Below, piece after piece: positions 11,680 to 59,032 of a DNA stretch of 64,000 bases. Location of the stretch: IMG/VR virus record IMGVR_UViG_3300020122_000238, positions 124,001 through 188,000 of that record; one strand, 5' to 3'. Numbering within the stretch: the stretch's first letter is position 1; the number at the start of each line of letters is the position of its first letter. Below the pieces are notes generated by a model. The model did not search any database. It saw only the letters and a program-made list of their open reading frames with translations, and had not been told where the DNA came from. Both the position numbers and the translations under genes were made by a program.

Positions 11680-12644
11680 TGAGCAACGAGGGCTCACACC
11701 AAGCGGACTTGAATCCGCCTCTCGGGAAGCCTGGAGGGCCCTCATCAGTCGTGCAGCGCATCCTTCAGCGGGTGCAAAACCCCCATCTTCAGCACGACCT
11801 CGTGGACGAAGTTCAGCAGGGAGAGGACCTCTCGAATGCTGAGGCCTCGAAGGTCTACCACCTGGACATCGAGCCCGGGATTGGTCTGATCAAGAGGATC
11901 CAGATCACAGCTCATGCCCAGTACCGGATGGATCTCCGGGGGGTAACTGTCGAGGCTGTTCAGGATGTTCTCAAGCACTTCGTGACACAGCTCAACAACT
12001 GGAAAGTGTTGAAGAGCCCTGCCTACGAGCGGATGCTCTCGACGCTCGGCTCAGGGGACAAGATCGAATGGGCGAACCCGAAAACGGGGCTCAGGATCGT
12101 GTTCTCCACGATTGGGCCGGGGACGGTGAATCTCATCACCACCTTCAACAAGTGGCACAACAGCTCGACGCCTGATCCTTCTATCGGGGCACCCACAAGA
12201 GGCGATATGTACTCTGATCTCGTTCATCGGGTTGCGGATCGATTCCAGGATGACGCTGTGATCACGGCGGCCGATGACGGAGGGGTGTGGCTCCCGGACA
12301 TGCTCGGCTCGAAGGAGAACCTCGTGAAAGAGATCCTCCTCGCCGCGAAAAAGATGGCAACCGCCGACACCTTCAAGAAGGGGACATCAAGAGCATCTGC
12401 GGCGGGGTCTTGTATTTCCTCATGGAGGAAAAGGCTGGGAAGGCCGTCGCGGACAAGCTCTGGAATCTCCTCGATGCCTCCGCTGGGCTTGATGTTGGGG
12501 CTGCGGTCAACAAGCTCGTCTGGCGAATCACGCCTCACCTGGACCATGGGGACAAGGGGAAAGTCCAGGCGGCAGCCGTTGGGATCTCGCTTCTCCAGCG
12601 CTCCAAGCAGCCGACCAAGGCTCAGCGAGCCAACGCCATTTTGA
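11679..12644 (+). CDS. DUF4258/RelE-like domain protein; the part after ~12380 is probably out of frame
   Basis: ITAHAQYRMDLRGV ... LRIVF ... LITTF pattern; in-frame internal start at 12207. Confidence 0.4.
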   Translation: MSNEGSHQADLNPPLGKPGGPSSVVQRILQRVQNPHLQHDLVDEVQQGEDLSNAEASKVYHLDIEPGIGLIKRIQITAHAQYRMDLRGVTVEAVQDVLKHFVTQLNNWKVLKSPAYERMLSTLGSGDKIEWANPKTGLRIVFSTIGPGTVNLITTFNKWHNSSTPDPSIGAPTRGDMYSDLVHRVADRFQDDAVITAADDGGVWLPDMLGSKENLVKEILLAAKKMATADTFKKGTSRASAAGSCISSWRKRLGRPSRTSSGISSMPPLGLMLGLRSTSSSGESRLTWTMGTRGKSRRQPLGSRFSSAPSSRPRLSEPTPF

Positions 12645-13078
12645 GGGACGCTATCAAGTCCTCGATCGACATGGCCGGGCCTCCTGAAGAGAAGGGGAAG
12701 ACCCCGACGGCGAAGGACACCTTCCTCCAGATGGTGAAGGACCAGATCCCCTTCGCGCAGACCCTCTACGGCGAGATCAAAGATCCCGGGATTGCCGCGC
12801 TGGTTGTCTCGTATGCTCTCGACAACGCGAACTTCGGAGAGGCAGCCTACTTCGCCGAGTCGACCCTCAAGTCGATCGCCACCAAAAACCCTCCCGACGA
12901 TGTCGTTCAAGACTTTGGGGGGCAGGTCTCGGACGAGATCAATTTCTCTGTCTACGAGACGGCCGCTTTTGGTGTGGCTCTGATGCAAGAAGCCGGTCAA
13001 GCGTCCGCAGCGCGAACCCTTTTCACCGGCTTCCTTCGCATCATCGGACCCGCCATCGGCCCTAGAAGCTTGTTCTAA
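12207..13078 (+). CDS. RVxxRF-tagged helical protein with a -1 frameshift near 12380
   Basis: MYSDLVHRVADRF start; protein-like sequence continues in the 12287..13078 frame after AAGAAGGGGAC. Confidence 0.5.
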
Positions 13079-13165
13079 AGAGCCCGGCACTCCTCGACGT
13101 ACTGGAGAAGTTGGGGGCTTGTATTCGGAACAGTCTCCCACACATCTGGGGCATCTGACGATGCT

Positions 13166-13204
13166 CATGGGGGTCCTACAGAGCGGACCCCCATGAGCTC
13201 AACC
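13166..13204 (-). promoter_or_regulatory. Class B promoter-like element (GGTTGAGC variant) overlapping a 14-bp hairpin
   Basis: GGTTGAGC-N16-TGTA-GGACCCCC-ATG; inverted repeat 13163-13176/13185-13198. Confidence 0.55.
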
Positions 13205-13710
13205 TAGAAGAGCGAAAGCTGCTCGGCGATCTTCTCGACGGGCTTCGTCTCCCAGACGATCTTCCCGTCGATCTTCCGGCCGATCTTGGCCCCGTTCTTC
13301 CTCCAGTAGTCAACGAACCTCTCGATCCCGACCTTATCGAGGCCAGTCCAGGAAGGCCGCACCATCTTCATGGCAGCCAGCCCTGCATACATGCCTTCGA
13401 GGCCCATGGCCATGGGCCCAAAGATGTCAGGGCAGGCATAGACCGAGTCCTTCGGGATCCGCGTGTCGAGCATGGGGGCAGCGAAGACGGCCCGCACGAT
13501 GTTGTCGTTGTCGAGGTTGTCGATGATGTAGACGTCGTCGACAACGTTCCCCAGCTCCCTCTCGAAGTCGTCGTGGGGGATGGAGACCGTGCTCTGGCCG
13601 TACCCCTCTTGAGGGCCGGGATAGCCCGTCAAGCCGCTCAGACCTCGCGTGAGGACAAGGTAGCGATCGTCGCGGGGGGCTTTGGGCGGCGTCTTCTTCT
13701 TGGTAGCCAT
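13204..13710 (-). CDS. Hypothetical protein ending in a beta-clamp-binding motif
   Basis: 168 aa, C-terminus EQLSLF; directly follows a class B element. Confidence 0.65.
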   Translation of the reverse strand: MATKKKTPPKAPRDDRYLVLTRGLSGLTGYPGPQEGYGQSTVSIPHDDFERELGNVVDDVYIIDNLDNDNIVRAVFAAPMLDTRIPKDSVYACPDIFGPMAMGLEGMYAGLAAMKMVRPSWTGLDKVGIERFVDYWRKNGAKIGRKIDGKIVWETKPVEKIAEQLSLF

Positions 13711-13746: not shown

Positions 13747-13749
13747 CCT

Positions 13750-28899: not shown

Positions 28900-30014
28900 A
28901 GCAATATCAAGACGCAGTCCGACACGTCCTCGCCAACGGAACTCGCAAGGAGAATCGGACTGGGGTCGATACCCTATCGACTTTCGGATACTACTACGAA
29001 GTGGACCTCGCCGAGGGTTTCCCGCTCCTCACCACCAAGAACGTGAGCTGGAAGAACATCGTCGTTGAGCTTTTGTGGTTCCTCTCGGGTCAAACCGATA
29101 TCGCGATCCTCAAGCGCCACGGTTGCAAGTTCTGGGATGCTTGGGCGGACCCTGATACGGGCAAGGTCCCGAGCGCCTATGGCAACTTCTGGCGCAAGTT
29201 TCCGGTTCATCGTCAAGATGATCCGAAATCCCCCGCAGTCCAATCCAGGGGATCAGCCATTTCGCCTGACTTCAACGACCAGATCGCCTGGGTGCTCGCT
29301 GAGATGCGCAGGAACCCCATGAGTCGGCGGATGGTCGTCTCGGCTTGGGCTCCCGGAAACGCACAGACGAGCAAGCTCCCGCCCTGCCACTGCCTCTACG
29401 TGTTCAACGTGCAGAACGCGGACCCGACGCCGAGGTACGTGCATTACGGACACAATAGGGGAGAGGACCCTGTGTGCGGCAACTACAATGACGGCCGACG
29501 GGTTCTGCCGCACGGGGAAGGGATGAAGTATCGGGAGGCATGGTGCCCCGACTGCCAGGTCCTTCTCAACGGAGCGCGAGGGGGCGATGTCTTCAAGAAC
29601 CCTCCTGTGGGGGACGACCCGCGTCGCCTCTGCCTTCATTTGACGCAGAGATCGCTGGATGTAATGCTTGGCGCACCGTACAACCTCGCCTCGTACGCGC
29701 TGCTCATCGAGCTGTTCAGCCGGTTCACGGGAATCAAGCCTGGGATTTTCGGGCATTCCGTGGTCGACATGCACATCTACTGTGCCAAGCCCGATGGGTC
29801 TATGGCCGAATACGACCACACCCCTGGTGCTCGCGAGCAACTTACGAGAGAGCCCCGTCTTCTTCCTCGCCTCATCATCGATGACAGTATCAAGGACCTC
29901 AGCGATATCGAACGCCTGATGGATCCATCGGTCACTACAGAAGAAATCATGGGTCTCTTCCGCTTGGAAGGGTACAATCCACACCCGGCCATCAACTTCA
30001 AAGTTGCAGTCTGA
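28896..30014 (+). CDS. thyA: Thymidylate synthase with a Cys/His-rich insertion
   Basis: NRTG, FPLLTTK, ELLWF, SRRMVVSAW, LPPCH, QRSLD, DMHIY; ends FKVAV. Confidence 0.93.
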   Translation: MKQYQDAVRHVLANGTRKENRTGVDTLSTFGYYYEVDLAEGFPLLTTKNVSWKNIVVELLWFLSGQTDIAILKRHGCKFWDAWADPDTGKVPSAYGNFWRKFPVHRQDDPKSPAVQSRGSAISPDFNDQIAWVLAEMRRNPMSRRMVVSAWAPGNAQTSKLPPCHCLYVFNVQNADPTPRYVHYGHNRGEDPVCGNYNDGRRVLPHGEGMKYREAWCPDCQVLLNGARGGDVFKNPPVGDDPRRLCLHLTQRSLDVMLGAPYNLASYALLIELFSRFTGIKPGIFGHSVVDMHIYCAKPDGSMAEYDHTPGAREQLTREPRLLPRLIIDDSIKDLSDIERLMDPSVTTEEIMGLFRLEGYNPHPAINFKVAV

Positions 30015-30032
30015 TGTTCACTGTGCTACGTC

Positions 30033-30911
30033 TTGGACGTGGTGACTGAAGAGTTCCTCCGAAAGAAGTACCTTGGCGATCTGCTCTCCCTTCGGCAGAT
30101 CGCTTCTCTTTGTGGTGTGGCTGTCGGCACGATCCGCTACCACATGAAGCGCTTTGGGATTCCTCGCCGAACGAAATCCGAGGCCCTCTCTGGGGACAAG
30201 AACCCCATGCATGGGAAGACGAAGTCAGATGCGACCCGGCGGAAAACCTCAGAGACCCTTCAAGTCACAAATAAGGATCCTGATGTAAAGGCCCGCCGAA
30301 GCGCCTCAACTTCGGGGATCCGAAATCCCATGTATGGGAAAACACACACAGAAGAGGTAAAGGAAGCCGCACACACAAGGCTGAATTCTATACGACACAC
30401 CCCAGACTTTGTGTCAGCTCAAAAAGCTGCAATGCAACGACTGGAAGTCCGCCAAGCTCTCTCGGAGAGCGCCTCCCAAAGAGTGGGGGAGAAGAACCCC
30501 TTCTTTGGGCATGAGCATAGCTCCGAGACCAAGCAGAAAATAGCTCAAGCCAACCGAGGTCGTTTTCTAGGGGAGAAGGGTTCCAACTGGAAGGGCGGGA
30601 AGACTCGACTCTCAGCTCTGATTCGGAACTCCGAACCGGCAATCCGATGGCGAAAGGATGTCTTCAAGAGGGACGCCTATACTTGCCAGAGGTGTGGTCA
30701 AATTGGGGGTCAACTACAGGCGGATCACATTCAACCTCTTGCGGGGCTCCTCGACGAGCACTGCATCAAGACCCTCGAAGATGCGTTCAACTGTCCCACC
30801 CTCTGGGATTTGACCAACGGTCGGACGCTCTGCATTTCGTGTCACAAAAAGACGCCTTCCTACGCGGGCAACTATCAGAAGAATTATCCTGCGTTCAAGG
30901 TCGCGGTGTAG
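30033..30911 (+). mobile_element. Free-standing HNH homing endonuclease with NUMOD3-like repeats
   Basis: NPMHGK/NPMYGKTH/NPFFGHEHS repeats, CQRC, DHI, NGRTLCISCH; ends FKVAV like thyA. Confidence 0.85.
30905..30910 (+). promoter_or_regulatory. Class A element GGTGTA overlapping a stop codon
   Basis: 10 nt before ATG 30921. Confidence 0.6.
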
Positions 30912-30920
30912 GCTTTCACA

Positions 30921-31430
30921 ATGCGGGCTCTCGACTGCTTCCTTCTTGAGGTTATACCCACCGGGGCCCTTGCGTTTTTTGACTTGGACCTCGGGGTGTA
31001 CTATCGACTGGGGGAGTCGCCGGCTCATGGGTATCCCAACATCGTGGAAGGGGAGGTCCAGCGACGGATTCAACGTATATTGTGCGAGCCCGTCGCTGTC
31101 TTCGATAGGATACTTGAGGATCGCGCTATGGAAATGCTGTGGAGAGCAGCATTGTCAAATGGGTGGATCCCTGAAGACACCCTCACAACCTGGTTTGCAT
31201 CGCATGACCTCGATTACCAGGGGTGTCGTATAGTCCACAACGGCTGTGAATTGGCTGTTGTTACTCCTGATACTCTCGGGGGGATTATCAGAGCTGATGA
31301 CGTGCAAGACTCACCCTCTGCCAGAAACCTTCTCCTGTTCAACCTCAAGGGGGTTGTGAGGATTGGAGACACGGAAGCAGTTCAAAACGCACGTCCCACC
31401 TTGTGGGACAAACTTGGAGACGACCTATGA
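30921..31430 (+). CDS. Hypothetical protein with TLWDKL-acidic tail
   Basis: 169 aa after a class A element. Confidence 0.55.
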   Translation: MRALDCFLLEVIPTGALAFFDLDLGVYYRLGESPAHGYPNIVEGEVQRRIQRILCEPVAVFDRILEDRAMEMLWRAALSNGWIPEDTLTTWFASHDLDYQGCRIVHNGCELAVVTPDTLGGIIRADDVQDSPSARNLLLFNLKGVVRIGDTEAVQNARPTLWDKLGDDL

Positions 31431-31606
31431 AAATCGGTGATGTGGTACAGCTCAAGTCCGGCGGTCCCGATATGACCGTGTTAGAAAAAACTCGCGAAGA
31501 AGATCTCTGGTGGCTGTGCGCCTGGTTCCATGGAGCCAACGTGGTTCAAGAGAGCTTCCCCGAAGCAGCTCTCGACCACATGAAGACGAAGTGCGACTTC
31601 GAGTGA
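31427..31606 (+). CDS. YodC/DUF2158-family small protein
   Basis: MKIGDVVQLKSGGPDMTV...CAWF...FPEAAL. Confidence 0.8.
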   Translation: MKIGDVVQLKSGGPDMTVLEKTREEDLWWLCAWFHGANVVQESFPEAALDHMKTKCDFE

Positions 31607-31845
31607 GCCCTGAAGAACTCGCGGCGCACAAGAAGCGCTTCCTCGACACGATGGAGAAGGCCTGGCACGATATTGAGGTTGCTTACAAGCAGCCGCACTT
31701 CCCCGCTTGCAAGGCAACGGAAATGAACGTCTTCATCGAGATGAAGTTCGACACGAACGACTACGTGATCGCCTGCAACCCCATCATCCCCATGCAGGGC
31801 GATTTCAACTCTTGGGCGCCCACCAAGACCATCAAGACCGGGTAG
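31603..31845 (+). CDS. Hypothetical protein
   Basis: GTG start overlapping upstream TGA. Confidence 0.5.
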   Translation: MSPEELAAHKKRFLDTMEKAWHDIEVAYKQPHFPACKATEMNVFIEMKFDTNDYVIACNPIIPMQGDFNSWAPTKTIKTG

Positions 31846-31852
31846 CGCTTTC

Positions 31853-31858
31853 GGTGTA
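31853..31858 (+). promoter_or_regulatory. Class A element GGTGTA
   Basis: 10 nt before ATG 31869. Confidence 0.65.
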
Positions 31859-31868
31859 CTATGCCCAG

Positions 31869-32372
31869 ATGGGCACCGAATTCGAGCGCAAGTTCCTCCT
31901 CACCACCACCGAGTACTTCCACCCCGAGGCCTATCGGAGTGGCGGGACGAACATCGTCCAGGGCTACCTCTCGGAGAAGCCCTGCGTGCGGGTTCGGACC
32001 ACGCTGAACACCCCCAACGAATTCCACGGTTTCCTCACCGTCAAGGGTCCGGGTCTACTCGAACGCCCCGAGTTCGAGTACGAAATCCCCTATGAAGAGG
32101 GAGTTTCGATGCTCGCCATGTGCCCGGACACACTGAAGAAGGTCAGATTCACGGTGTACACCGCGGGGCATCTTTGGGAGGTCGACCGTTTCGGTGGCCA
32201 CCTCGAAGGGCTCTGGCTTGCGGAAGTCGAGTTGAAGAACTCGACTGAGTACATCGAGCACCCCGCCTGGCTCGGGAAAGAGGTCACGTTCGACGCTCGC
32301 TACCAGAACGTGAACCTCATCAAATGGGGGGTCCCCCAAGAAGACCCCGGTGTAATCTTGGGGAATGCCTGA
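31869..32372 (+). CDS. CYTH-domain (triphosphate tunnel) protein
   Basis: EFERKFL, QGYL, VRVR, LTVKG, EFEYEI, WEVD, AEVEL. Confidence 0.88.
   Translation: MGTEFERKFLLTTTEYFHPEAYRSGGTNIVQGYLSEKPCVRVRTTLNTPNEFHGFLTVKGPGLLERPEFEYEIPYEEGVSMLAMCPDTLKKVRFTVYTAGHLWEVDRFGGHLEGLWLAEVELKNSTEYIEHPAWLGKEVTFDARYQNVNLIKWGVPQEDPGVILGNA
32349..32354 (+). promoter_or_regulatory. Class A element GGTGTA
   Basis: 10 nt before ATG 32365. Confidence 0.65.
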
Positions 32373-32832
32373 GAAAGAAACCTCCGCAGTCCAGGGCTTG
32401 ATCCGCTTCTACAAGCAGGTCCTCAACGACCCAGCCCGCGTGGGAGCGATCCTCACTTCTTCCGGGGATCACTACAACGTACGAATCGTCGTGTTCTCGG
32501 GTTATGGGCACAACGCCGTGTTGTTCCAGATTTGCAGTGCGGACAGCACCGAGTCGTATGAGACTGCGGCCCAACAGCTCTTGCACAGCTACCGGGACAT
32601 CGCTATCGCCTTCCAGGACCTCTCCTTCTACAGCAACGGGCAGAAGATCCCAAAGGTGCGGTGCCTGTGCGTCAACTGTTCATCCGGGCATCGGAAAAAC
32701 CTGTGCTATGCCCGGGTGGCTGACATTCAGAGTTTTGGGGGGACGCTCCTGTGCTCAAGCTGCATGAGAAACCACCCTTCAAGTGTGGCGGCTGTGCTCA
32801 ATCAGGATGACGATGAAGAGGATATCGGGTAG
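32365..32832 (+). CDS. Hypothetical Zn-finger protein
   Basis: CLCVNC...C...CSSC. Confidence 0.5.
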   Translation: MPEKETSAVQGLIRFYKQVLNDPARVGAILTSSGDHYNVRIVVFSGYGHNAVLFQICSADSTESYETAAQQLLHSYRDIAIAFQDLSFYSNGQKIPKVRCLCVNCSSGHRKNLCYARVADIQSFGGTLLCSSCMRNHPSSVAAVLNQDDDEEDIG

Positions 32833-32837
32833 GTCCT

Positions 32838-32843
32838 GGTGTA
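32838..32843 (+). promoter_or_regulatory. Class A element GGTGTA
   Basis: 10 nt before ATG 32854. Confidence 0.65.
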
Positions 32844-32853
32844 CTAGACCCCC

Positions 32854-34105: not shown

Positions 34106-34108
34106 CTC

Positions 34109-36548: not shown

Positions 36549-36558
36549 AAGCGTCCAC

Positions 36559-37104: not shown

Positions 37105-37107
37105 GCC

Positions 37108-37272
37108 ATGGGTGCCGAACCTGATTGGGCCAAAGATCCTGACGCCGTGATCGCCAAGCTGAATGCGCCCGAGAGCCCTTACTCCAATGGGTGCTCGTGT
37201 GCAATCGGTCTCGCGATCATGTGCGTCGTAATCTTGGGGGGCATTGGTGGTCTGATCTCCCTGTCCCACTGA
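37108..37272 (+). CDS. Small membrane protein (54 aa)
   Basis: MGAEPDW... with C-terminal hydrophobic helix; below ORF-track cutoff. Confidence 0.45.
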   Translation: MGAEPDWAKDPDAVIAKLNAPESPYSNGCSCAIGLAIMCVVILGGIGGLISLSH

Positions 37273-38093: not shown

Positions 38094-39202
38094 TTGCAGC
38101 TAGGGTTGTAGCTCGCTACCTTCGAGCAGACGAAGGCGAGGCGGACTCAGCGAAGGGGGGCGTTCCCGCTCGTTGGAAGGAGTGGTTGGACGCACTCCAC
38201 GATGGGGGGAAGTCGAGGATTACAAATCCCAACCCAGAAACGAAGAGCCGTCATCCGGAGGTATCGTACAGCACTGCCCTCAAGACTCCCCACTTCTTCA
38301 CGCATGCGCTGAAGGAGTACAAGGAGTGGGCGAAGAAGAACCCCGAGAAAGACGGAGGCACCCCAAAAAAGGAGAAAGCCCCTGAAAAAGAGACGGAGTC
38401 TTCTGGGCTCACCTTGAAGGGGCCCTTCAGCATCAAGCCCGGCACCATTGACGAAATGCTTGAGAAGCATAAGGCCCATTTTGATACCATTGTGGGGGGT
38501 TTGAAAAAGAAAGTCGATACCTACCTATCTTCAAGTGAGGTGTCTGAGGACCCTATCATGAAGAAGCACTTCCTTTCTCTTTCGCCCAATGAGAAAATGG
38601 TTCATGTGGGGGGCCATGAGATCGGGAAGTATTTCGAGGACAACGTTCTTTCAAAGGATGACGTTGAAATCCACGATATCTACTTCAATGCTTGGCGGAT
38701 CTCCGCTGGGAATAATGAATCAAATCATCTACATGGGATGATGGCAGCCTCGGGGGTGAAAGGATATAAAACCCCCGAGGAAGAGAAGGATGATGGGCGT
38801 ACAGACAAAAACCGTAAGTTCGGAGCGGGGGACGAAGAGCTTCATGGGTATGCACAGAAGATGTATGCTTTTCAACAAGCCTTTTTCAAACATATCGGCC
38901 TGAAGGAAGTGACTCTTTTCCGTGGGGTGCGTGGGCAAGGGTTGGACAAAGAGCCTCCCCATGAAGATGATTCCGTATCTTTCAAAGCTCGCGAGCTATC
39001 CTCGTATACAACGGACCCCCGTGTATCGGATGGGTATGGGCGGGCTCTCAAATTCAAAGTACCTGTTGAAAGAGTATTTGGGTCATCTCTTGTCCGACCC
39101 AAGATAGGATCGGACACCTCTCCAGGGTCATTTGGAGAAGCCGAAATGATCCTCATGGGAGCTTCTGACCTTCAAGGTACTATCATTAACAAGGCTGAGT
39201 AA
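38090..39202 (+). CDS. Putative ADP-ribosyltransferase (R-S-E type) with RVVARY tag
   Basis: TLFRGV ... LSSYTTD ... GEAEMIL in the C-terminal domain. Confidence 0.6.
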   Translation: MIAARVVARYLRADEGEADSAKGGVPARWKEWLDALHDGGKSRITNPNPETKSRHPEVSYSTALKTPHFFTHALKEYKEWAKKNPEKDGGTPKKEKAPEKETESSGLTLKGPFSIKPGTIDEMLEKHKAHFDTIVGGLKKKVDTYLSSSEVSEDPIMKKHFLSLSPNEKMVHVGGHEIGKYFEDNVLSKDDVEIHDIYFNAWRISAGNNESNHLHGMMAASGVKGYKTPEEEKDDGRTDKNRKFGAGDEELHGYAQKMYAFQQAFFKHIGLKEVTLFRGVRGQGLDKEPPHEDDSVSFKARELSSYTTDPRVSDGYGRALKFKVPVERVFGSSLVRPKIGSDTSPGSFGEAEMILMGASDLQGTIINKAE

Positions 39203-39204: not shown

Positions 39205-39369
39205 ATGGCGGATATAGAGATCCATCTGTCTGGGGAAAACGAAGACTGGCTTTGTAAGAAAGATGACGAAGAACCCAAAAAGCCAAAAGAGGCGACGCTC
39301 GTTGAACGTGTGGCTCGGCGAGCGTCGCGATCAAAACGTCCCCCAAAAGAATCCGGAATGGTGTACTAG
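39205..39369 (+). CDS. 54-aa protein with LVERVARRA tag
   Basis: MADIEIHLSGENEDWL...; starts 2 nt after ART stop; below ORF-track cutoff. Confidence 0.5.
   Translation: MADIEIHLSGENEDWLCKKDDEEPKKPKEATLVERVARRASRSKRPPKESGMVY
39360..39365 (+). promoter_or_regulatory. Class A element GGTGTA
   Basis: 10 nt before ATG 39376. Confidence 0.65.
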
Positions 39370-39375: not shown

Positions 39376-40623
39376 ATGGCCCAAAACATCGCTAAGTGCT
39401 CGTTCTGTGGAAAGCCCCGCAATGAGGTGAAAGCCCTCGCGGGGAGTGACGGGGGCGCCCTCATCTGTGACAAGTGTGTGGGGCAGATCGGTCGAGCCTT
39501 CGGCGAAGCGGAGCTGAAGAAGAACGCCGACAAGAAGGAAGTCCTTCGCAAGCCCATGGAAATCCGGGCTTTCCTGGATCAATACGTCATCGGGCAGGAA
39601 CGGGCGAAGGTGGACATGGCGGTGGCTGTCTACAACCACTACAAGCGGCGGGATGCCATCCGCCAACACCTGGATCTCGGAGTCGAGATCCAGAAGAGCA
39701 ACATGATGGTCATCGGCCCGAGCGGGTGCGGCAAGACCGAGATCGCTCGAACCCTCGCCAGGATGCTGGGGGTGCCGATGTTCAACGCGGACGCCACCAA
39801 GCTGACACAGGCGGGCTACGTCGGAGATGACGTCGAGAGCTTGATCCAGGGGCTCATCGCGGATGCCAACGGGGACATCGAGCGTGCTCAATGGGGGATC
39901 ATCTTCATCGATGAGTTCGACAAGCTGGCTCGGAAGTCGGGGCGGGGGTCGACCGGCTATCGCGACGTCACGGGGGAAGGCGTTCAGCAGAGCCTCCTCA
40001 AACTCCTCGAAGGGAACAAGATCAACGTGCCCCGCGGGCAGATGAAGAGCACGTCGGGTGGCGAATCGGATCCGTTCGACACCACCAACGTGCTCTTCAT
40101 CTGCGCGGGATCCTTCGCTGGCATTGAGGACATCATCTCGCAACGGGTGAACCACAAGTCGAGCCTTGGATTCGGCGCGGAGGACAAGAAGAAGCTCTCC
40201 AAGACGGAGACCTACCTGGAGGTGAAGGAAGACGACATCCTCAGCTTTGGGATCATCCCCGAGCTGATGGGCCGCGTGCCGGTGCTCACGACGGTGATCG
40301 AGCTGACGGAGGATGAGATGTTGCAGATCCTCACGGAGCCCCGTAACGCCATCATCAAGCAGGTCAAGGCCCTCTTTCACATGGACCGCATCAATCTCCA
40401 GTTCGATGATGCCGCCCTCCGGCACATCGCCAAGGAGGCCAAGAAGCGCCCGACTGGAGCCCGCGGGCTTCGTTCCGTCGTCGAGAGCATCTTGGCTCCG
40501 TACGCCTACAGCTCGCCGAGCGACCCCACGATTGTCTCGATCCGGATCACGGAGGAAGCGACCATGGGGAAGGAGCAGGCCGTCATCCTCCGCAGGTATG
40601 TCCCGGCAGAAGCGGTGGGGTAA
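39376..40623 (+). CDS. clpX: Clp protease ATP-binding subunit ClpX
   Basis: CSFCGK Zn domain, GPSGCGKT, AGYVGDDVE, IDEFDK, RDVTGEGVQQ, LGF loop, TGARGLR. Confidence 0.95.
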   Translation: MAQNIAKCSFCGKPRNEVKALAGSDGGALICDKCVGQIGRAFGEAELKKNADKKEVLRKPMEIRAFLDQYVIGQERAKVDMAVAVYNHYKRRDAIRQHLDLGVEIQKSNMMVIGPSGCGKTEIARTLARMLGVPMFNADATKLTQAGYVGDDVESLIQGLIADANGDIERAQWGIIFIDEFDKLARKSGRGSTGYRDVTGEGVQQSLLKLLEGNKINVPRGQMKSTSGGESDPFDTTNVLFICAGSFAGIEDIISQRVNHKSSLGFGAEDKKKLSKTETYLEVKEDDILSFGIIPELMGRVPVLTTVIELTEDEMLQILTEPRNAIIKQVKALFHMDRINLQFDDAALRHIAKEAKKRPTGARGLRSVVESILAPYAYSSPSDPTIVSIRITEEATMGKEQAVILRRYVPAEAVG

Positions 40624-41185: not shown

Positions 41186-41901
41186 AAGTTGGCCTCATCT
41201 CAGACCTTCACTTCGAGTTTCAACGAGACTCGGGGCGGTCGCTCGTGAACCACATCCTCCCTGATGGCTGCGATGTGCTCGTTGTGGCGGGAGACCTCAC
41301 GGTGGGAGCTGAGCTGGTCCCGGCTCTGAAGATGCTGTGTGAGCAGTACCGAGAGGTGGTCTACGTCCCGGGGAACCACGAGTACTACCGGATGACCCGG
41401 GGCGAGCTTCGCAAGAGGCTACACACCTTCGCCGGCCGCCACAAGAATTTCCACTGGCTGGACAACAGCTCTGTGGTTCTTGGGGGACATCGCTTCCTTG
41501 GGGGTACGATGTGGTTTCGACATGACCCCGTCGCCCTGAAGGATGAAATGTGGGACTTCCGGCTCATCCCCGAGCTGGAGTCCTGGGTGTACCAGGATAA
41601 TGCAGCCACACTCACATTCTTCCAGAAGGAGGTGCAGGAGGGAGACATTGTCGTCACGCACCATCTCCCTTCTCCGCGGTCGACTCCCGAGCAGTACAAG
41701 GAATTCAAGATCAATCCGTTCTTCGTCTGCAACATGGAGGAGCTGATCCTCGCGAAGAAGCCTGCGATTTGGATGCACGGCCATACCCACGGGTCCTTCG
41801 ACTATCGGCTTGGGGATACGCGGGTGCTCTGCAACCCATTCGGGTACGCTCGGAAAGAAGAGAACCCCAAGTTCAATTTCGAGTTGACCGTGACCGTTTG
41901 A
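41182..41901 (+). CDS. Calcineurin-like metallophosphoesterase
   Basis: SDLH, AGD, GNHE, THHLP, HGHTH. Confidence 0.9.
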   Translation: MKVGLISDLHFEFQRDSGRSLVNHILPDGCDVLVVAGDLTVGAELVPALKMLCEQYREVVYVPGNHEYYRMTRGELRKRLHTFAGRHKNFHWLDNSSVVLGGHRFLGGTMWFRHDPVALKDEMWDFRLIPELESWVYQDNAATLTFFQKEVQEGDIVVTHHLPSPRSTPEQYKEFKINPFFVCNMEELILAKKPAIWMHGHTHGSFDYRLGDTRVLCNPFGYARKEENPKFNFELTVTV

Positions 41902-41927
41902 GAGTTCTTTGATATGACGGATGGATC

Positions 41928-42434
41928 ATGGATCGTCTTGCACTTGAGGTTTTCCGTCGGTTCCAAGAGTCTCACTTGAAGCCTACTTGTTTGTTCCGTA
42001 TCGGGAAGCCTTCCAGTGCCAAACCCTACGCTCAGGTCAACATCACGGCGTCTGTGGCCTTGAGCCAAAAAACCCCGTTGGGGGTTGACCCCTCACGGGG
42101 TGGCAACGGGTTGACCCGCCCTCAGTTCAACCCCGAGATCCCAGAAAAGGTGGCTGCGCTAGCCGCAACGGTTCGGGATTCCCTGGGCAAGTTCTTCGAG
42201 GAAAATGGGGTTGAAGGGGCGGTCACCTACTGCGAATCTGCGGCCTCGTTGAGCCGATTCGTGGGGCAACTGCACGCTGGGAACTACACGGACCCTCTCA
42301 ATTTCCTGGGGGCCCATTTCAGGGTTCCCTACGGAGCCGGGCAGAAGAAACGAGTGGTTCACCTCTCTCGGGACATCGCTCGACTGGCCAGTGCGTTCGA
42401 GAGCAGCATGGATGTCGAAGTGAAACTGGAGTGA
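41928..42434 (+). CDS. Hypothetical protein (LEVFRRF tag variant)
   Basis: 168 aa. Confidence 0.55.
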   Translation: MDRLALEVFRRFQESHLKPTCLFRIGKPSSAKPYAQVNITASVALSQKTPLGVDPSRGGNGLTRPQFNPEIPEKVAALAATVRDSLGKFFEENGVEGAVTYCESAASLSRFVGQLHAGNYTDPLNFLGAHFRVPYGAGQKKRVVHLSRDIARLASAFESSMDVEVKLE

Positions 42435-42468
42435 TCTTCTTGTTTTTCTCTTGTGCCCCTCCCTCAGT

Positions 42469-43260
42469 GTGAGTGACCTCGTCCATCGTGTTGCGAACCG
42501 CTATGCAGCGGTGGTCCTCCCTTTCAAACCCAAGTTTGGGGTCCCGACGGCCACCATTGGGGGTCGGAAGTACGTGCTCAGCACGTACCGTGGAGAGGGG
42601 ATGGACGTCTCGGAGAAAGTCAATGAGGGCGGCCCTGGAACGGGGCACGCTCGCTACATTCATCTCCCGAGCAACACCCCTTGGCGATACATATGGGTGT
42701 TCGATGCTGAGAAAAAGATCGTGGCCATGTGGCAAGTCTCTGAAGGGGACCTGAAGATCCACGGCCCTTCTGGGCACTTCGCTTCGATGATCGTGCATCT
42801 CGAAAAGAAGGGGCAGCTCAACCGGGTCACTCACGAAGAATACCGCGACCTCGAAAAGAAGATGGAGCTTGTCTACGACAAGACCGTGTCTGACCTCAAG
42901 ACTTTTTTCGAGCAGAACGACAGCGACTTCCAAAAGAAGGTCAATGCGGGCGTTCAGGAATACTATGCCAAGTACGTCAAGCCCAAGGTGGACAAGGCCA
43001 TCTCTGATGTGTTGAATGGTGCCACTCCTCTGGGGTTCAAGCCCTACGTGAGCCCGCACCGATCCACACAGAGCCAGGCTATCGGCTTCAACGTGGGGAT
43101 GGTTCTCAAGAGGGAGCTGGACCTATCGAAGGTTGAAGAGGCTCTGGTCCGCATGGGGATCAATGTGCATTCCCCCCACGAGGACAACCAGGCGACCTAC
43201 TGGGCCATCGGCGATATCAAGGATACAGTTCTTGACCGGCTTTCCACCGAGTATACCTGA
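42469..43260 (+). CDS. RVANRY-tagged hypothetical protein
   Basis: GTG start gives MSDLVHRVANRY, nearly identical to the 12207 N-terminus. Confidence 0.6.
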   Translation: MSDLVHRVANRYAAVVLPFKPKFGVPTATIGGRKYVLSTYRGEGMDVSEKVNEGGPGTGHARYIHLPSNTPWRYIWVFDAEKKIVAMWQVSEGDLKIHGPSGHFASMIVHLEKKGQLNRVTHEEYRDLEKKMELVYDKTVSDLKTFFEQNDSDFQKKVNAGVQEYYAKYVKPKVDKAISDVLNGATPLGFKPYVSPHRSTQSQAIGFNVGMVLKRELDLSKVEEALVRMGINVHSPHEDNQATYWAIGDIKDTVLDRLSTEYT

Positions 43261-43303
43261 TGCCCCGCCGATAAATCTCCTATCTTTCCGCCAAGGTGCC
43301 CCC

Positions 43304-44101
43304 ATGACTACACGTCGCACACTTCTCCGCGTTGTCGCTCGTTTCCAAATGCAGCTTGCCATGGAGCATTCATCGCCAGAAGAGCTGAAAGAGTACCTGC
43401 ACGAGCACCCCCAAGCCGACCCTGCGAACCACACCGTCACGAAGAAGGAAGAGCACGGGGGTGGTGATGAGCACGATGCCCCCAAGAAGTCCTGGAAAGA
43501 ACGCCTGCAAGGACTCGGGGCAAAGGCGAAGAAGTTCTACGAAGACGCGCCCGCGGGAGTCAAGCAGTTCTTCACCGACGATGCCTATCGTCGAACGGCG
43601 CTCATGGGAGCCCACAAAAAGCTGATGGATGCTCCGCACAACGTCGTTCAGCACGCCATTCAGACGGTCAAAAACGAGGTGAAGGAGTACAAGGATGCGG
43701 CAGCCGGGGTGAAGGCTGTCCTCAAGGGAGGCAAGATGACCCCCGAGCAGAAGCATGCCTTCAAGACGGTTGTCAAGCACATGGCTGTTACCGCAGCAGC
43801 AACGGCTCTAACAGTGAGTGGGGGGCCTCTTGTTGCTGCGGGTGCTTTTGGAAAGACGCTCGCAAAGAATCTCGCGATGCGAGCAGCACATGATGCTCTT
43901 GGCCATTATGATGGTCTCCACGAATACATGGAGATTGGCCACGGGATCCACAAACATCTCCATCACCTTCTCGCCGCGGATGAGGACGCCAAGGTGGACG
44001 AGGCGATCGCGAAGTTCGTCATGGCCAAGGTCGCCAAACAGATCCAGGACCTCGACATGGACGCGATCGAAGCGGCCCTCAAGGAAATGGACTCGGAGTA
44101 A
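43304..44101 (+). CDS. RVVARF-tagged His/Lys-rich protein
   Basis: MTTRRTLLRVVARFQ; central Ala/Gly hydrophobic segment. Confidence 0.6.
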   Translation: MTTRRTLLRVVARFQMQLAMEHSSPEELKEYLHEHPQADPANHTVTKKEEHGGGDEHDAPKKSWKERLQGLGAKAKKFYEDAPAGVKQFFTDDAYRRTALMGAHKKLMDAPHNVVQHAIQTVKNEVKEYKDAAAGVKAVLKGGKMTPEQKHAFKTVVKHMAVTAAATALTVSGGPLVAAGAFGKTLAKNLAMRAAHDALGHYDGLHEYMEIGHGIHKHLHHLLAADEDAKVDEAIAKFVMAKVAKQIQDLDMDAIEAALKEMDSE

Positions 44102-54387: not shown

Positions 54388-54660
54388 ATGGCTTCTCGTG
54401 AAATGACCGCTAGGGGGTTCTTCGATGTGGGGGACCGGATTCTGTACGGCAAGTACAAGAACAAGAAGGGCCGGATCGTCTCCGTGGGGCTCGACGTCAA
54501 GGGAAACCCCATCATCGAGATTGAGCCCGTCCCCAAGGGCCGGAAGAAGAACCAGATCATCGGGCTCTACAAGATATGGCATGACCCTCCGCCGGCACTT
54601 GCTCAGAAGGTGCTCGCTCGTTACACCCAGTCCGCCATGCTCGACGACGGGGAAGACTGA
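54388..54660 (+). CDS. Small KOW/SH3-like protein with C-terminal KVLARY tag
   Basis: FDVGDRILYGKYKNKKGRIV. Confidence 0.5.
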   Translation: MASREMTARGFFDVGDRILYGKYKNKKGRIVSVGLDVKGNPIIEIEPVPKGRKKNQIIGLYKIWHDPPPALAQKVLARYTQSAMLDDGED

Positions 54661-54663: not shown

Positions 54664-56544
54664 ATGTCTCTGACCTCTCGGGTTCTTGCCCGTTACCTCG
54701 AAGCAAAGAAGGCTCCTGATCCGGAGTTTTTCCTCTCCGCCAAGTTCTTCCGAGAGCAGAAGGCGGACTTGACGAAACGGCTCAAGGCACCGTTGAAGTC
54801 AGGCTCTCGTGGTCTGGACTCAATGGAATACGTTATTGGGGATACACTCACCCCCTTCTTCAAGAAGTTCGAGCAGGACTTTGCTGCCGTCATCACCTAT
54901 CAAAAAGCTTTGGACTTCGTACACCAAGCTGTTGAAGGCACCATCGCAAAGCTTGCGAAAATCGGGGATTACGCTCGTTTTGTGGGAACCATCGTCCCCT
55001 TGCCGCCCAAAGGAGATGTAGAGGCCGAGCTTCGCTGGCTGGCGCATAATGAGGCTTTGGGCGTTTTTGAGGAGAAGGTCAGTAACCTACAGGACTTTCT
55101 CAAGTATGAGTGGGATGTTGACAAGCATCTTCGAGAAGTGCTCGTCAACAGAACGTCCGTGGGCATTACCACTCCAGAATTGAAGAAAGCTTTCGAAGCC
55201 TCTTGGGATGATTCCTATGGGGACGTCAATAGCTTGCTAAGGTGGGAATACCTCACCCAAATGCACTTCTACGACACGGCAAAGAAGACTCTCAAGAGGA
55301 AGCCTCCGGCAGACCCCATCACGTTTTACACCCAATGGGTTGGAGCTGTGTATGAGGCTCTATTCAGGTTCAATTCCGATTACGTAGACCCTGCCAAACC
55401 CCTGTACCGAGAGATCGACCTCTACGGGATGAAGGTTGTCATCAATGACAACACTGTCACCCCGGAGGATACGGGGAACTACATTCAGTTCATCGATGAG
55501 ACATACGCTCGGCTTCGAGCCAAGAAGCTTGAATCTGCCTGGTATGGGCACATTCTCATTGAATGTAAGGAGTGCGGGGGCATCAACTCCAACGGAGCGG
55601 ACTATGGTGTGGGGGGCAACTATACAGTCAAGGAAGATACTGTTCGTATCTTTGACCGTCCCGGCAGGTATATCGTAGACCTTTTGGCGCACGAGCTGGG
55701 GCATCGCTACTGGTATCAAAAACTGACGTCTGAGCAACGCACACACTTCGCAGATCTGGTCAGGGTACACAAGCGCTCCCGTCCAGACCCCAAGAAGATG
55801 ACCCCCCCGTACATCATCAGCCCTGAAAGGGAGAAGAAAGTAAAGGGTATGATTCTTGACTATGGCGTCAAGATTGTACACGTCCTTGCTGAGTTCCGGG
55901 ACTCCAAAGAGGGGTATACCTCGGACATGGCCAAGTTTCGACCGCAACTCTCAAGTCTTGCGGAAGACTTCAAAGACGAGACCAACTACACTCTTGACTA
56001 CGCCGGTACAGAAAGGGATATCACCCCCGCAGTATCCGACCTATTCAAAGAAGTTCAGAAGGACGCCCAAAAGGTGGTCGAGACCTTGAGCTATGCCTCC
56101 AGGCTGGACAATTACTTGTACACGTCTCCTGACGAAAACGCCGAGAACCAAGCGTTCTCGGAACTCAAAGAGAACGTGTATAAAGAGGTGGTCAAGTTTC
56201 TCGATGACCACATGAACTCCGCGTATAGCTTCATCAAGCTAGCTATCATGGCGCACAACGCGAAAGAAACCAGAGAGCACGACCCGGCGGTCAAGACCAA
56301 AGAGTGGCAAGCTGAGTTCGACAACGACCCCAGGCCTGTGTCCCCCTTCTCAGAATACGGGAGCAACAACATCAGCGAGGCATGGGCGGAGGTGTTCATG
56401 GCCTACGTCACGAACAAGGACCTTGACAGGGATCAGCTCGAATCGTTCAAGACCATCCTGAAGCGATCCTCCCTCGTGACAGCCGAGCAAGTGCTTGCTC
56501 GCTTCCGGCTTCTTGTGGAAGATTGCTCTTGTACGTCGACCTGA
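54664..56544 (+). CDS. Zincin metallopeptidase-domain protein with RVLARY tag
   Basis: LAHELGHRYW (HExxH) and distal SEYG..N..EAWAEVF third-ligand motif. Confidence 0.7.
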   Translation: MSLTSRVLARYLEAKKAPDPEFFLSAKFFREQKADLTKRLKAPLKSGSRGLDSMEYVIGDTLTPFFKKFEQDFAAVITYQKALDFVHQAVEGTIAKLAKIGDYARFVGTIVPLPPKGDVEAELRWLAHNEALGVFEEKVSNLQDFLKYEWDVDKHLREVLVNRTSVGITTPELKKAFEASWDDSYGDVNSLLRWEYLTQMHFYDTAKKTLKRKPPADPITFYTQWVGAVYEALFRFNSDYVDPAKPLYREIDLYGMKVVINDNTVTPEDTGNYIQFIDETYARLRAKKLESAWYGHILIECKECGGINSNGADYGVGGNYTVKEDTVRIFDRPGRYIVDLLAHELGHRYWYQKLTSEQRTHFADLVRVHKRSRPDPKKMTPPYIISPEREKKVKGMILDYGVKIVHVLAEFRDSKEGYTSDMAKFRPQLSSLAEDFKDETNYTLDYAGTERDITPAVSDLFKEVQKDAQKVVETLSYASRLDNYLYTSPDENAENQAFSELKENVYKEVVKFLDDHMNSAYSFIKLAIMAHNAKETREHDPAVKTKEWQAEFDNDPRPVSPFSEYGSNNISEAWAEVFMAYVTNKDLDRDQLESFKTILKRSSLVTAEQVLARFRLLVEDCSCTST

Positions 56545-56554: not shown

Positions 56555-57316
56555 ATGCCTAGCCTGCCCTTCCGAGTAGCTGCCCAACATGTCGTCTCCC
56601 GTCGGGGGGCCGCTCTACGATCCGTCGTGGCAAGGGGAAGCTCTGGGGGGATGCCACTTCCTCCGGAGATGGCGGACCACCCTGCTCTGACCGCGGGGCT
56701 GACGAAGATTTATCCCAACCCCAAAGAGGTCGGTGGCTACCTCGGGGTCATCGACGGCGGATCTTGGATCGCCTTCGTGGGTGTGGATGGGAAGACTGAG
56801 CTATGGACCTCCCGCGAACCCAAGGGCGGCACCATCGGGAATCCCTATGTGTTCCAACGGGACGACATCTCTTCGGCGTCGACCGTGACCATCCCGAACC
56901 CTGTGTTCCAGTTCTACTCCCCCATCGAACTCAAGATTATGGGGGTCACGCAACGGGTCGCTGCTCGCTACAAGAAGTCCTCCGATGACTCTCTGTCTGA
57001 GGTTGTCGAGAGATACATGATGGCAACCTCACAATATCTTGGAAAACGTCTCGGTGGGTCCAAGTCCGGCGTCATGAAGTCCCAGTTCCCCAAGTGGAAA
57101 ATCGGGGTCTCCCTGAGCAACCCGTTAGTTTTTGACCACGTCATCGACGTGGTCCTCGATGGGTGTACATTGGTGTTTTCAGCATACCAATACACCCCTG
57201 GTTCGACGGGACTGCAACTCATCAAAAAAGCCACAGCTTCCGTGAACTCGTCTCCCAGTGACTTCGTTGAAGTCTTGGCGAGGGCGTACGAAAATCAAGC
57301 TTCGGACCTGTACTGA
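56555..57316 (+). CDS. Two-module hypothetical protein with RVAAQH and RVAARY tags
   Basis: Motif at the N-terminus and again mid-protein. Confidence 0.55.
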   Translation: MPSLPFRVAAQHVVSRRGAALRSVVARGSSGGMPLPPEMADHPALTAGLTKIYPNPKEVGGYLGVIDGGSWIAFVGVDGKTELWTSREPKGGTIGNPYVFQRDDISSASTVTIPNPVFQFYSPIELKIMGVTQRVAARYKKSSDDSLSEVVERYMMATSQYLGKRLGGSKSGVMKSQFPKWKIGVSLSNPLVFDHVIDVVLDGCTLVFSAYQYTPGSTGLQLIKKATASVNSSPSDFVEVLARAYENQASDLY

Positions 57317-57324
57317 AGGCAACC

Positions 57325-57621
57325 ATGAACGATCTCACGCTTAGGGTTGCGGCCCGCTATGCTCTTGCTTCGGGGGTGGTCCTTGTCAAAAGCAAGGTGA
57401 AGGGGAATTACAGAACAGTAGATGGTGCCTACTGGTTTCGCCCCATGGAGACGCATAACAACAACACTCGTCCTGAACGCTATGATGTCATTCGGATGAG
57501 TGACCGGGTTACAGTTGCTGAGGGTATGACCCTCGCTACCGCTAAAAGGCGATTTGAGGCTTATCTCAAGGATGTTGAGACTGGGTCGCCGCTTCAAAAA
57601 CTTCCTTATGATCGTGGTTGA
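57325..57621 (+). CDS. RVAARY-tagged small protein
   Basis: MNDLTLRVAARYALA. Confidence 0.6.
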   Translation: MNDLTLRVAARYALASGVVLVKSKVKGNYRTVDGAYWFRPMETHNNNTRPERYDVIRMSDRVTVAEGMTLATAKRRFEAYLKDVETGSPLQKLPYDRG

Positions 57622-57664
57622 AATACAAGAATATCGGTAACTTCCCTCTAGAAAAATGAAAGCA

Positions 57665-59032
57665 ATGAGCACGTCTCAATCTCTTCGCGTTTTGGCGAAG
57701 TATAAAGCCAAAAAGAAGGTCAAGAATCAAGACGGCGAGGACATGACCGTCTACGAGTATTCCGACAAGCAAATCGCCAACCGGAACCGGGAGAAGGCGA
57801 AGCGAATCGAGAAGCTCCGAGGCAAGATCGACGACGTCCGCTCGAAGGCCAAGAAGGACCTGAAGTCGAGCGACCCCGAGAAGATGCTCACGGCACTCGC
57901 CGTGATGCTGATGGACCACACGTATGAAAGGGTTGGGAACGACGAGAGCGCGGACGACGGGCACTTTGGGGTCACGGGCTGGCAGAAGGACCACATCACC
58001 TTCAGCAAGGGCGGGGCGACCATCAAGTACGTCGGCAAGTCCGGCGTCAAGCACGTCAAGAAGGTGACCGACTCGACCATCACCAAGGCGCTCAAGGATG
58101 CCTGTGAGGCGGCTGAGAACGAGACGTCTTGCATCTTCGAGTGGGACGGGGGCAAGGTCTCAGCCGAGAAGGTGAACGCCTACCTGAAGGAGTTCGACAT
58201 CTCGGCGAAGGATATCCGTGGGCTACATGCAAATGTCGAAATGCAGGAACAGCTCAAGGCTGCCAGGAAGAAGGGCGGCAAGCTTCCCGAGGACCCCAAG
58301 AAGCGGGATAAGCAGCTCAAAGAGGAGTTCAAAGAAGCACTCGAAGTCACGGCGGAAGCCGTAGGCCACGAGCCTGCCACGCTGAAGAGCCAATATTTGG
58401 TCCCTGGAATGGAGGAAGATTTCTTGAAGGACGGCGTGATCAACGAGAAGCTCCACACGAAGACGGCAGATCTCAAGCAGGGGTGCGCCGGCTGTAGTTG
58501 CCACGCTAAACCCGAGGAGCACGACCAGTCGGAACGGGTGATTGCTCGTTTCTTGAGCCAGGACAAGAAAGCGGTGGGGTATTACGATACCGATCGTGAT
58601 GAGACTTGGGTGGATCCTACAAAGGACCTCGACAAGTGGCTTGATAGGCTTCTACGCTTGACTCAAGAGGCCAAACGAGATGCCCCAGGAGAGCATCGAC
58701 GTGGAGAAGGCCCTGGGAAGGCCTATCTAGAGCTTTCCAGCTTTATGGGAGACCGGGAGCACACGAAGTGGTACAAGTTCTTCTATGCTTCCACTGTTCA
58801 GAAGGATGTCTCGTCCGCTATAGTCCCCAACGACTATAGCGATCCCAAGATGGCGCAAGACTACAGTCAATGGCTCGACAAGTTGGAGGACGCTATCAAG
58901 GACGCGGACGCGGAAATCCGTAGGGATGACCGTCCTGGAGACAAGATGTTCGAGCTGAAATGGATCATGAAGAACTACAGTAAAGAGAAGTGGTATGCCT
59001 ATTACTTCATGCAGTCCATGACATTCCGGTGA
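57665..59032 (+). CDS. DNA topoisomerase IB with C-terminal extra domain
   Basis: RVGN, GKSG, KDIR, VGH.....KSQY match the catalytic R-K-R-H-Y set. Confidence 0.85.
   Translation: MSTSQSLRVLAKYKAKKKVKNQDGEDMTVYEYSDKQIANRNREKAKRIEKLRGKIDDVRSKAKKDLKSSDPEKMLTALAVMLMDHTYERVGNDESADDGHFGVTGWQKDHITFSKGGATIKYVGKSGVKHVKKVTDSTITKALKDACEAAENETSCIFEWDGGKVSAEKVNAYLKEFDISAKDIRGLHANVEMQEQLKAARKKGGKLPEDPKKRDKQLKEEFKEALEVTAEAVGHEPATLKSQYLVPGMEEDFLKDGVINEKLHTKTADLKQGCAGCSCHAKPEEHDQSERVIARFLSQDKKAVGYYDTDRDETWVDPTKDLDKWLDRLLRLTQEAKRDAPGEHRRGEGPGKAYLELSSFMGDREHTKWYKFFYASTVQKDVSSAIVPNDYSDPKMAQDYSQWLDKLEDAIKDADAEIRRDDRPGDKMFELKWIMKNYSKEKWYAYYFMQSMTFR

Follow-up and report, generated by a model that had tools for sequence, protein, structure and literature searches.

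The window analyzed here comprises 64,000 nt (bases 124001–188000) of a single linear contig of 275,300 bp, an IMG/VR virus from a Joint Genome Institute (JGI) metagenome record, and encodes a series of proteins that share a peptide of about 10 residues with the consensus L-A-x-R-V-[AVL]-A-R-[YF]-L (hereafter, the tag). About fifteen otherwise unrelated proteins of this phage bear the tag at an end or a domain border, as do their counterparts in hundreds of related phages. An initial annotation of the window had quoted nine N-terminal copies (at 12207, 38090, 41928, 42469, 43304, 54664, 56555, 57325, and 57665), all of which are present as quoted. Gene calls made independently by JGI agree on the start codon in seven of these cases (38090, 41928, 42469, which is a GTG, 43304, 54664, 56555, and 57325) and begin the topoisomerase gene at 57656, three codons upstream of 57665. 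Positions are those of the window unless given as genome positions, and the tagged genes of the window described below all lie on the plus strand.

The first group of tagged genes begins with an ADP-ribosyltransferase (ART)-like protein of 370 amino acids (aa; 38090–39202), which is DRAT / ADPrib_exo_Tox-like according to its structural neighbors in the Atlas (PF07357 is found in several of its homologues) and which carries the tag IAARVVARYL (38093–38122) followed by the acidic stretch RADEGEAD. A small open reading frame (ORF) at 39205–39366 follows; the peptide reported there, LVERVARRA, does exist (as TLVERVARRA), but the ORF is uncalled and the partial tag lacks the aromatic residue, leaving it a weak candidate. 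Next lies an untagged gene that the initial annotation had missed, encoding a ClpX homologue of 415 aa (39376–40623) whose N-domain is of the zinc-finger type, whose pore loop reads GYVG, and whose LGF loop is of the IGF type. Beyond it are three tagged genes whose products have no assigned function: a 168-aa protein (41928–42434) with the weak N-terminal tag LALEVFRRFQ (41937–41966; 14.2 bits with the independent matrix described below), a 263-aa protein with a GTG start (42469–43260; N-terminal tag LVHRVANRYA, 42478–42507), and a 265-aa helical, histidine-rich protein (43304–44101; N-terminal tag TLLRVVARFQ, 43319–43348).

The second group occupies 54–59 kb. A small KOW-like protein (54403–54660) carries the tag LAQKVLARYT at its C-terminus (54598–54627, some 10 residues before the stop codon), a tag that also ends a 335-aa protein in the relative L002. 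The zincin-like metallopeptidase that follows (626 aa, 54664–56544) has the motif HELGHRYW with EAWAEVF downstream and is tagged at both ends, by LTSRVLARYL (54670–54699) and TAEQVLARFR (56479–56508); some of its homologues carry Peptidase_Mx families, and a Foldseek search with its model against the PDB returned no significant match. A 253-aa protein (56555–57316) has a weak N-terminal copy, LPFRVAAQHV (56564–56593), and a strong internal one following an ATG, VTQRVAARYK (56945–56974). After a 98-aa protein with the N-terminal tag LTLRVAARYA (57325–57621; tag 57334–57363), the group closes with a topoisomerase IB (57656–59032; PF01028, 8e-27), in which the N-terminal tag QSLRVLAKYK (57677–57706) is joined by an internal copy, QSERVIARFL (58526–58555), separating the core from a 165-aa C-terminal domain. 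The internal and C-terminal copies reported earlier as AQKVLARY, AEQVLARF, TQRVAARY, and SERVIARF thus recur in our analysis (10-mers at 54598, 56479, 56945, and 58526), and the body types assigned to the tagged proteins, namely ART, zincin, topoisomerase IB, and a remainder without assigned function, hold as well. Three sites of the original set are weak: 41928 (EVFRRF), 56555 (RVAAQH), and 39205 (no aromatic residue).

An outlying tagged gene without an assigned function lies at 12207–13078, its tag variant R-V-A-D-R-F (LVHRVADRFQ, 12219–12248) standing at the N-terminus of the ORF that starts at 12207. Some 57 codons into the frame opened at 12207, the sequence ceases to resemble coding DNA; the coding signal is picked up by the frame of 12287–13078, and JGI called 12422–13078 only. 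In contigs from three other runs, the G-run at 12376–12379 is one G longer (five, the extra base falling after 12379), which yields a single ORF of ~290 aa, and we therefore consider the window copy, which shares its four Gs with one identical contig, to be frameshifted at this run. Possible causes of the four-G run are an error of assembly, a genuine frameshift, and homopolymer slippage.

The tag is far more frequent than chance would allow. The regular expression RV.A[RKNDQ][YFH] matches 10 times on the plus strand and once on the minus strand of the whole 275-kb contig, with eight of these matches falling within 38.1–58.5 kb of the window. To avoid circular statistics, we derived a scoring matrix exclusively from 39 tags of homologues on other contigs, scanned the contig with it in six frames, and used residue shuffles as the control. 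At ≥16 bits the contig contains 12 matches, against a shuffle mean of 0.33 and a maximum of 2, and at ≥18 bits it contains 10, against a shuffle mean of 0.07. The initial observation is confirmed and strengthened. All matches are on the plus strand and inside real ORFs, and nine of the 12 at ≥16 bits are independent, the other three being orthologues of training proteins. Additional copies lie beyond the window at genome positions 28509, 41424, 41951, and 55913. De novo enumeration of exact patterns had no power (owing to R/S runs in noncoding frames, imprecise starts, and the excessive strictness of 5-of-6 patterns).

It is the peptide rather than the DNA that is conserved, because synonymous positions vary: the codons of the tag change freely at third positions (Arg is encoded by CGG, AGG, CGT, CGC, or CGA and Val by GTT, GTG, GTA, or GTC), which rules out a repeat or regulatory element acting at the DNA level. 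Nor are the tagged proteins paralogues, as BLASTP finds the tag to be their sole common part and no other likeness between the bodies behind it, in agreement with the earlier description of these bodies as unrelated. The replication and metabolic enzymes (DNA polymerase, helicases, DnaB, thymidylate synthase, and DHFR) are free of the tag, as had been noted. A literature search for the hexapeptides found nothing relevant, and a recent multi-omic study of phage G does not describe such a tag (PMC12484599); the tag is undescribed so far and is without sequence likeness to the T4 capsid targeting sequence (CTS) or to the loading peptides of encapsulins and microcompartments.

The phage itself has no near relative among deposited phages by megablast, and protein-pattern scans of viral contigs with zincin and topoisomerase queries recovered no close relatives. 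Relatives were recovered instead through the protein database and the major capsid protein (MCP; genome 45652–46533), a 293-aa HK97-type, PF05065-like protein whose profile matches PDB 6WKK at 5.6e-65. The MCP shares 82% identity with its counterpart in the uncultured 485-kb phage LR745208.1 and 89–100% with those of the IMG/VR loci retrieved (loci L108–L187) among >470 related contigs, several of which span 360–510 kb with terminal repeats; it is 48% identical to the MCP of Tunturiibacter phage Tunturi_5 and 39% identical to gp27 of Bacillus phage G. Judged by these MCP identities, the phage is a member of a large uncultured megaphage clade related to phage G. A search for the host with ClpX patterns in genome contigs returned random taxa and was uninformative.

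Across this clade, the tag persists while the proteins that carry it diverge. Homologues of the zincin at 30–45% identity, on contigs of 200–465 kb, nearly all start with it (e.g., MHEDVLALRVAARF, MNLARRVVARH, VDQLAKRVARRF, and MDLALRVAARY), and many are tagged at the end as well (...RVLERYKAGL, ...ARVVARYLQAK, and ...KVAARFARVT). Homologues of the ART at 36–52% identity keep the tag together with a conserved acidic stretch after it (ADEGE...KGGVPxRW), and some have two tandem tags or a C-terminal one. The topoisomerase IB of every relative examined (L088, L089, L002, LR745208.1, G003, and G004) retains an RVAARYK(E/S)KK tag, and tandem double tags are found in P0152, in the topoisomerase IB of G004, and in LR745208.1 at 462981. 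These comparisons indicate selection on the tag throughout this wide clade.

In a nonredundant set of 74 tags scoring ≥16 bits, drawn from this genome and 85 related loci, 70 are on the plus strand; 26 are N-terminal, 13 lie ≤20 residues from the C-terminus, 14 follow an ATG within a longer ORF, and 21 are internal. The earlier description of the motif as an N-terminal signal is thus too narrow, since 13 of the 74 are C-terminal and 35 are internal or ambiguous. The proposal that an alanine shortly after the tag could serve as a prohead-protease site fares no better: no residue after the aromatic position is conserved across cargo families, and the conserved acidic ADEGE stretch belongs to the ART family only. 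What does stand is the notion of a portable peptide on unrelated bodies, which is kept in zincin and ART orthologues at 30–50% identity and is modeled as a detached helix. In an AlphaFold (AF2) model of the zincin built with 15 homologues, tag helices at residues 3–13 and 607–619 (predicted local distance difference test, pLDDT, of about 40) are parted by unstructured linkers from a body with pLDDT 80–95. The tag is probably a short helix carried by a flexible linker, and the detachment and low pLDDT of the modeled helices suggest a peptide that folds on a partner and is not part of the enzyme.

Comparison with relatives also points to an exchange of modules at the tag. In L002, the closest relative, the N-terminal half of the 56555 protein and its internal tag are fused directly to the topoisomerase IB, whereas in the window a different C-terminal half, the tagged 98-aa gene, and a new tag intervene before the topoisomerase IB. 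In LR745208.1, it is a HAD-like domain with a tag that precedes the topoisomerase IB, and the tagged C-terminal 75 residues of this HAD-topoisomerase IB protein align with the tagged N-terminus of the 990-aa protein that the phage of the window encodes after its portal. These fusions and exchanges imply that the "internal" tags are largely the N-terminal tags of fused or swapped modules. Whatever the destination of the tagged proteins, the tag marks the module borders at which these phages swap effector domains.

The head operon, which lies outside the window (coordinates in this paragraph are genome positions), carries tags of its own. An ORF headed by the tag at 28509 sits just before the terminase genes, and from TerL (29680–33072) the operon proceeds through the portal (35343–37181), the 990-aa low-complexity protein with the variant GRIVDRFLEA, two small genes (125 and 243 aa), and the tag MVTGARVIQRF (41424) to a 111-aa protein (41687–42022) that ends in TRVLARFQAESK... 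and directly precedes the head maturation protease (42031–43518); downstream of the protease are a 425-aa scaffold-like protein, a 210-aa protein, and the MCP. Four head proteins of this operon (MCP, portal, scaffold-like protein, and prohead protease) are themselves untagged. In 45 related head modules (905 kb), 59 tags are found on the coding strand versus one on the other, and they recur in the post-portal protein (near the N-terminus after SLNYKxVGGS, and at ~700 aa), in small pre-protease ORFs (RMVTP....RVAARY), and in post-MCP genes. LR745208.1 encodes its tagged HAD-topoisomerase IB within the head region, with the portal gene on one side and the protease gene on the other. The stretch from the terminase to the portal of this genome holds three tandem paralogues (33327–34900), each ~172 aa long and alike at both termini.

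The tag is as conserved across the clade as the MCP, which is by a wide margin the best conserved of the head proteins: between this phage and LR745208.1 the MCP is 82% identical, and the corresponding values are 48% (portal), 33% (protease), and 30% (scaffold-like protein). Clade-wide, the portal and TerL are ~50–66% identical and the protease 33–52%, and the constraint on the MCP is unusually strong. The head module of Tunturi_5, with its only 48% identical MCP, has no tag, and phage G has a single convincing copy (gp13, MKRLISKTAARYA). The phage G gp13 gene lies just before that of the portal, and its product begins MKRLISKTAARYAASG, a match to the tag; the phage G head-module proteins gp5, gp9, gp10, gp12, gp17, gp20, and gp38 share a different N-terminal motif, [KR]-R-L-[IK]-K. 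In LR745208.1, two large ORFs resembling transposon-type RNA-guided nucleases or transposase accessory proteins (L092 12006–13307 and 15475–16758) interrupt the terminase-portal region, and a GIY-YIG-like gene precedes the protease; the head operon therefore appears to tolerate mobile insertions.

We hypothesize that the tag is a prohead-targeting peptide for packaged or ejected cargo, a reading that we rank first and give an even chance. Under this hypothesis, the tag would address unrelated proteins to the assembling prohead, where they would be enclosed in the capsid and then delivered with the DNA. The cargo would be a changeable set (the DRAT-like ART, the zincin peptidase, the topoisomerase IB, and small proteins without assigned function); the tag is also found on head proteins of structural or ejection type whose genes neighbor those of the portal and the protease. 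The address would function from either protein end or from between domains, with tag-plus-domain units exchanged between genes at the tag, and the candidate docking partners are the 425-aa scaffold-like protein, the post-portal protein, and the inner face of the HK97-type MCP. Nothing indicates that the prohead protease removes the tag. The earlier suggestion that effectors are loaded into the head gains circumstantial support from the tags in head modules, the placement of the LR745208.1 topoisomerase, the anti-defense cargo, a conservation on a par with that of the MCP, and the lack, common to tagged genes and head genes, of the two promoter-like elements described below; it loses the cleavage site. 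The tagged proteins of relatives include a Tad3 anti-Thoeris domain (PF25185, 2e-24; L194:16360–17628) and a zeta-toxin-like kinase domain (L204:7051–8742), both in the complete genome G004, as well as a nucleotidyltransferase fusion, and the structural neighbors of the window ART include Atlas clusters with fusions of Phage_Mu_F and ART. These cargo types (ART, peptidase, and anti-defense proteins) match those packaged by other phages, and given the tagged Tad3 and zeta-kinase domains, the tag may serve to find anti-defense genes.

One of the closest parallels is the CTS of T4, whose Alt is a head-delivered ART. Both in T4 (internal proteins IPI, IPII, and IPIII, with the head-packaged Alt) and here, a short peptide is the sole common part of diverse, fast-evolving, largely anti-host proteins with an ART among them. 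The small tagged genes just before the prohead protease are placed as T4 genes 67 and 68 are, and in this genome, as in the 45 related loci, tagged ORFs lie beside the genes for TerL, the portal, and the protease. In T4, diverse internal anti-defense proteins are known to share only the CTS (PMC3012670). The tag differs in that it is also C-terminal or interdomain, often occurs twice per protein, lacks a conserved protease site, has no sequence likeness to the CTS, and spans a very wide clade. Encapsulins and microcompartments offer a second parallel, in which short terminal or interdomain peptides borne on linkers address unrelated enzymes into a shell; the encapsulin shell has the HK97 fold, as does the 293-aa MCP, and the tags of the zincin are likewise predicted to lie outside the cargo fold as low-confidence helices on linkers. 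The consensus is a different one, however, and the cargo genes here are scattered instead of lying beside the shell gene, with a scaffold and a protease present. A third parallel is with the MuF polymorphic toxins of temperate phages and with P1 Dar, where variable enzyme or toxin modules, including ARTs, are brought into the head by a constant targeting part, although that part is a folded MuF domain of ~300 residues and not a 10-residue peptide. In the most far-reaching form of the hypothesis, loading would be encapsulin-like: the tag would dock on a hyperconserved HK97-type capsid or core component, any tagged protein would be loaded and injected, the tag-coding sequence would be the swap junction, and ClpX, acting without a phage ClpP, might read the tag as well, e.g., in order to retain, unfold, or remove cargo. 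We offer this combination tentatively, as a possibility that is more likely to fail than to hold.

Several observations weigh against head targeting. The tag density of head modules (~6.5 per 100 kb at ≥15 bits) is not clearly above the genome average, and most tagged genes of the window sit among genes for nucleotide metabolism and replication. No conserved protease site precedes or follows the tag, and its six consecutive conserved residues exceed what a one-faced amphipathic helix needs. A by-eye search upstream of tagged genes and head genes saw no late promoter common to both. The MCP model, built from 10 near-identical sequences, has a pLDDT of 32 and is unusable for inspecting a docking site, and the phage is represented by an uncultured metagenomic contig alone, with an estimated completeness of 58% (CheckV). 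The particle proteome of phage G, in which 55% of the nucleic-acid enzymes were detected, is too inclusive to test packaging (PMC12484599). Finally, the tag resembles ligands of the ClpX N-domain, and a ClpX gene is embedded in the tagged cluster.

This last point leads to the main alternative, which we consider unlikely and in which the tag is a ligand of the zinc-finger N-domain of ClpX and acts as a tether or degron that hands proteins to the phage ClpX, or perhaps that of the host, for timed unfolding and degradation with host ClpP (e.g., to limit toxic early effectors) or for remodeling by ClpX alone. The ClpX of the window, with its zf-C4_ClpX domain and its GYVG and LGF loops, is encoded between tagged genes, as is also the case in G003 and G004; ClpX is present in five of five large clade genomes (53–65% identity; four of them complete) and on two further contigs, and on another contig it lies near the ART. 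The core of the tag, phi-phi-R-V-phi, matches the XB peptide of SspB, RGGRPALRVVK, which docks on the N-domain of ClpX in competition with lambda O and two FtsZ sites (PMC3983244). Tags such as LALRVAARF match XB, as does the end of a small protein of one relative, ...LALRVVARFTSR, and the occurrence of tags at either terminus and in pairs fits the logic of ClpX signals; the SspB XB tail and the N-terminal signal of lambda O share with the tag a terminal placement, paired sites, and a core of two hydrophobic residues, a basic residue, Val or Ile, and a further hydrophobic residue. This resemblance spans only five residues, however, and the tag is longer: its invariant Ala and Arg-[Tyr/Phe] after the core have no XB counterpart, and it is modeled as a helix (with low confidence), whereas XB binds ClpX as a beta-strand. 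Nor is degradation an obvious fate for tagged head-module proteins, where such signals make little sense, and the window ClpX, at 60–71% identity to many bacterial ClpX proteins, bears no mark of specialization. The only relative without ClpX, LR745208.1, can be read both ways, since its tags are fewer and more degenerate (six of ≥16 bits in 485 kb, versus 11–14 in other complete genomes) and yet are retained without a phage ClpX at about ten times chance. Phage G encodes both ClpX and ClpP (PMC12484599), which we count in favor of this alternative; a ClpP (PF00574) search found no match in this contig or in four complete clade genomes, and with the LGF loop present, ClpX could still pair with host ClpP. 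In two genomes the ClpX frame extends to 777 and 795 aa (G002:C1:280073–282379 and G005:C1:277116–279440), with ~350 extra residues near residue 120 that may be an intein or an inserted domain. The ClpX and head readings may be compatible, as neither need exclude the other. If ClpX reads the tag, these phages would be the first family in which a phage-encoded ClpX is paired with a dedicated code, as degron or tether, on a dozen of the phage's proteins.

The helical, detached tags and the proteins with two tags, including the tandem doubles of P0152, G004, and LR745208.1, would suit bridging and raise the prospect of a general assembly helix, binding either its own kind or a hub (a DNA-bound protein, the membrane, or RNA polymerase) to form a cytoplasmic multienzyme takeover complex. 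Most tagged genes being outside the structural module and the failure to find a cleavage site agree with such an arrangement, but it lacks a candidate hub and leaves unexplained both the tags adjacent to portal and protease and the parallel with packaged ART and anti-defense proteins, so that we rate it a poor prospect. We regard as highly improbable, in turn, that a phage protease, either that of the prohead or the tagged zincin itself, recognizes or cuts the motif, which would then mark the cutting points of propeptides and fused modules. In favor of this are the placement of the motif at N-termini, near C-termini, and where the domains of fused modules meet, a tagged gene with a protease gene directly after it, and the invariable presence of the zincin in the set; against this, the prohead protease, scaffold-like protein, MCP, and portal have no motif copy, a helix with 6–7 conserved consecutive residues is unlike known prohead-protease sites, and cleavage at tags 2–5 residues from the N-terminus would release only a stub.

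Should the tag indeed target proteins to the prohead, it would provide, from sequence, a listing of the injected arsenal of an abundant uncultured clade (>470 IMG/VR contigs), including new anti-defense candidates among the tagged proteins that lack an assigned function. It would also offer a very compact means, attachable to either terminus, of bringing foreign proteins into a large capsid, and would show that the addressing of cargo by short peptides, as in T4, encapsulins, and microcompartments, also operates throughout a wide lineage of phages.

The tagged genes are also set apart by what precedes other genes of this phage. Two classes of start-anchored DNA elements lie upstream of about a quarter of its genes, many of them for replication or metabolism. 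None of 13 tagged genes is preceded by either class, in line with the initial annotation, and the head genes at 24–66 kb likewise have neither. The class A element, (C/T)GGTGTA(A/G), begins ~16 nt before the ATG of 44 genes (in the window, e.g., at 14198, 16629, 24720, 28085, 32349, 36543, and 51894). The class B element, GGTTGATC-N17-(C)TGTAGGA, begins 36 nt before the start of 22 mostly small genes on both strands, with minus-strand examples in the window at 13746, 14170, 53188, 53948, and 54353. Both classes place TGTA(G/A) 10–12 nt before the start codon, and this fixed short distance suggests that they are promoters with very short leaders.

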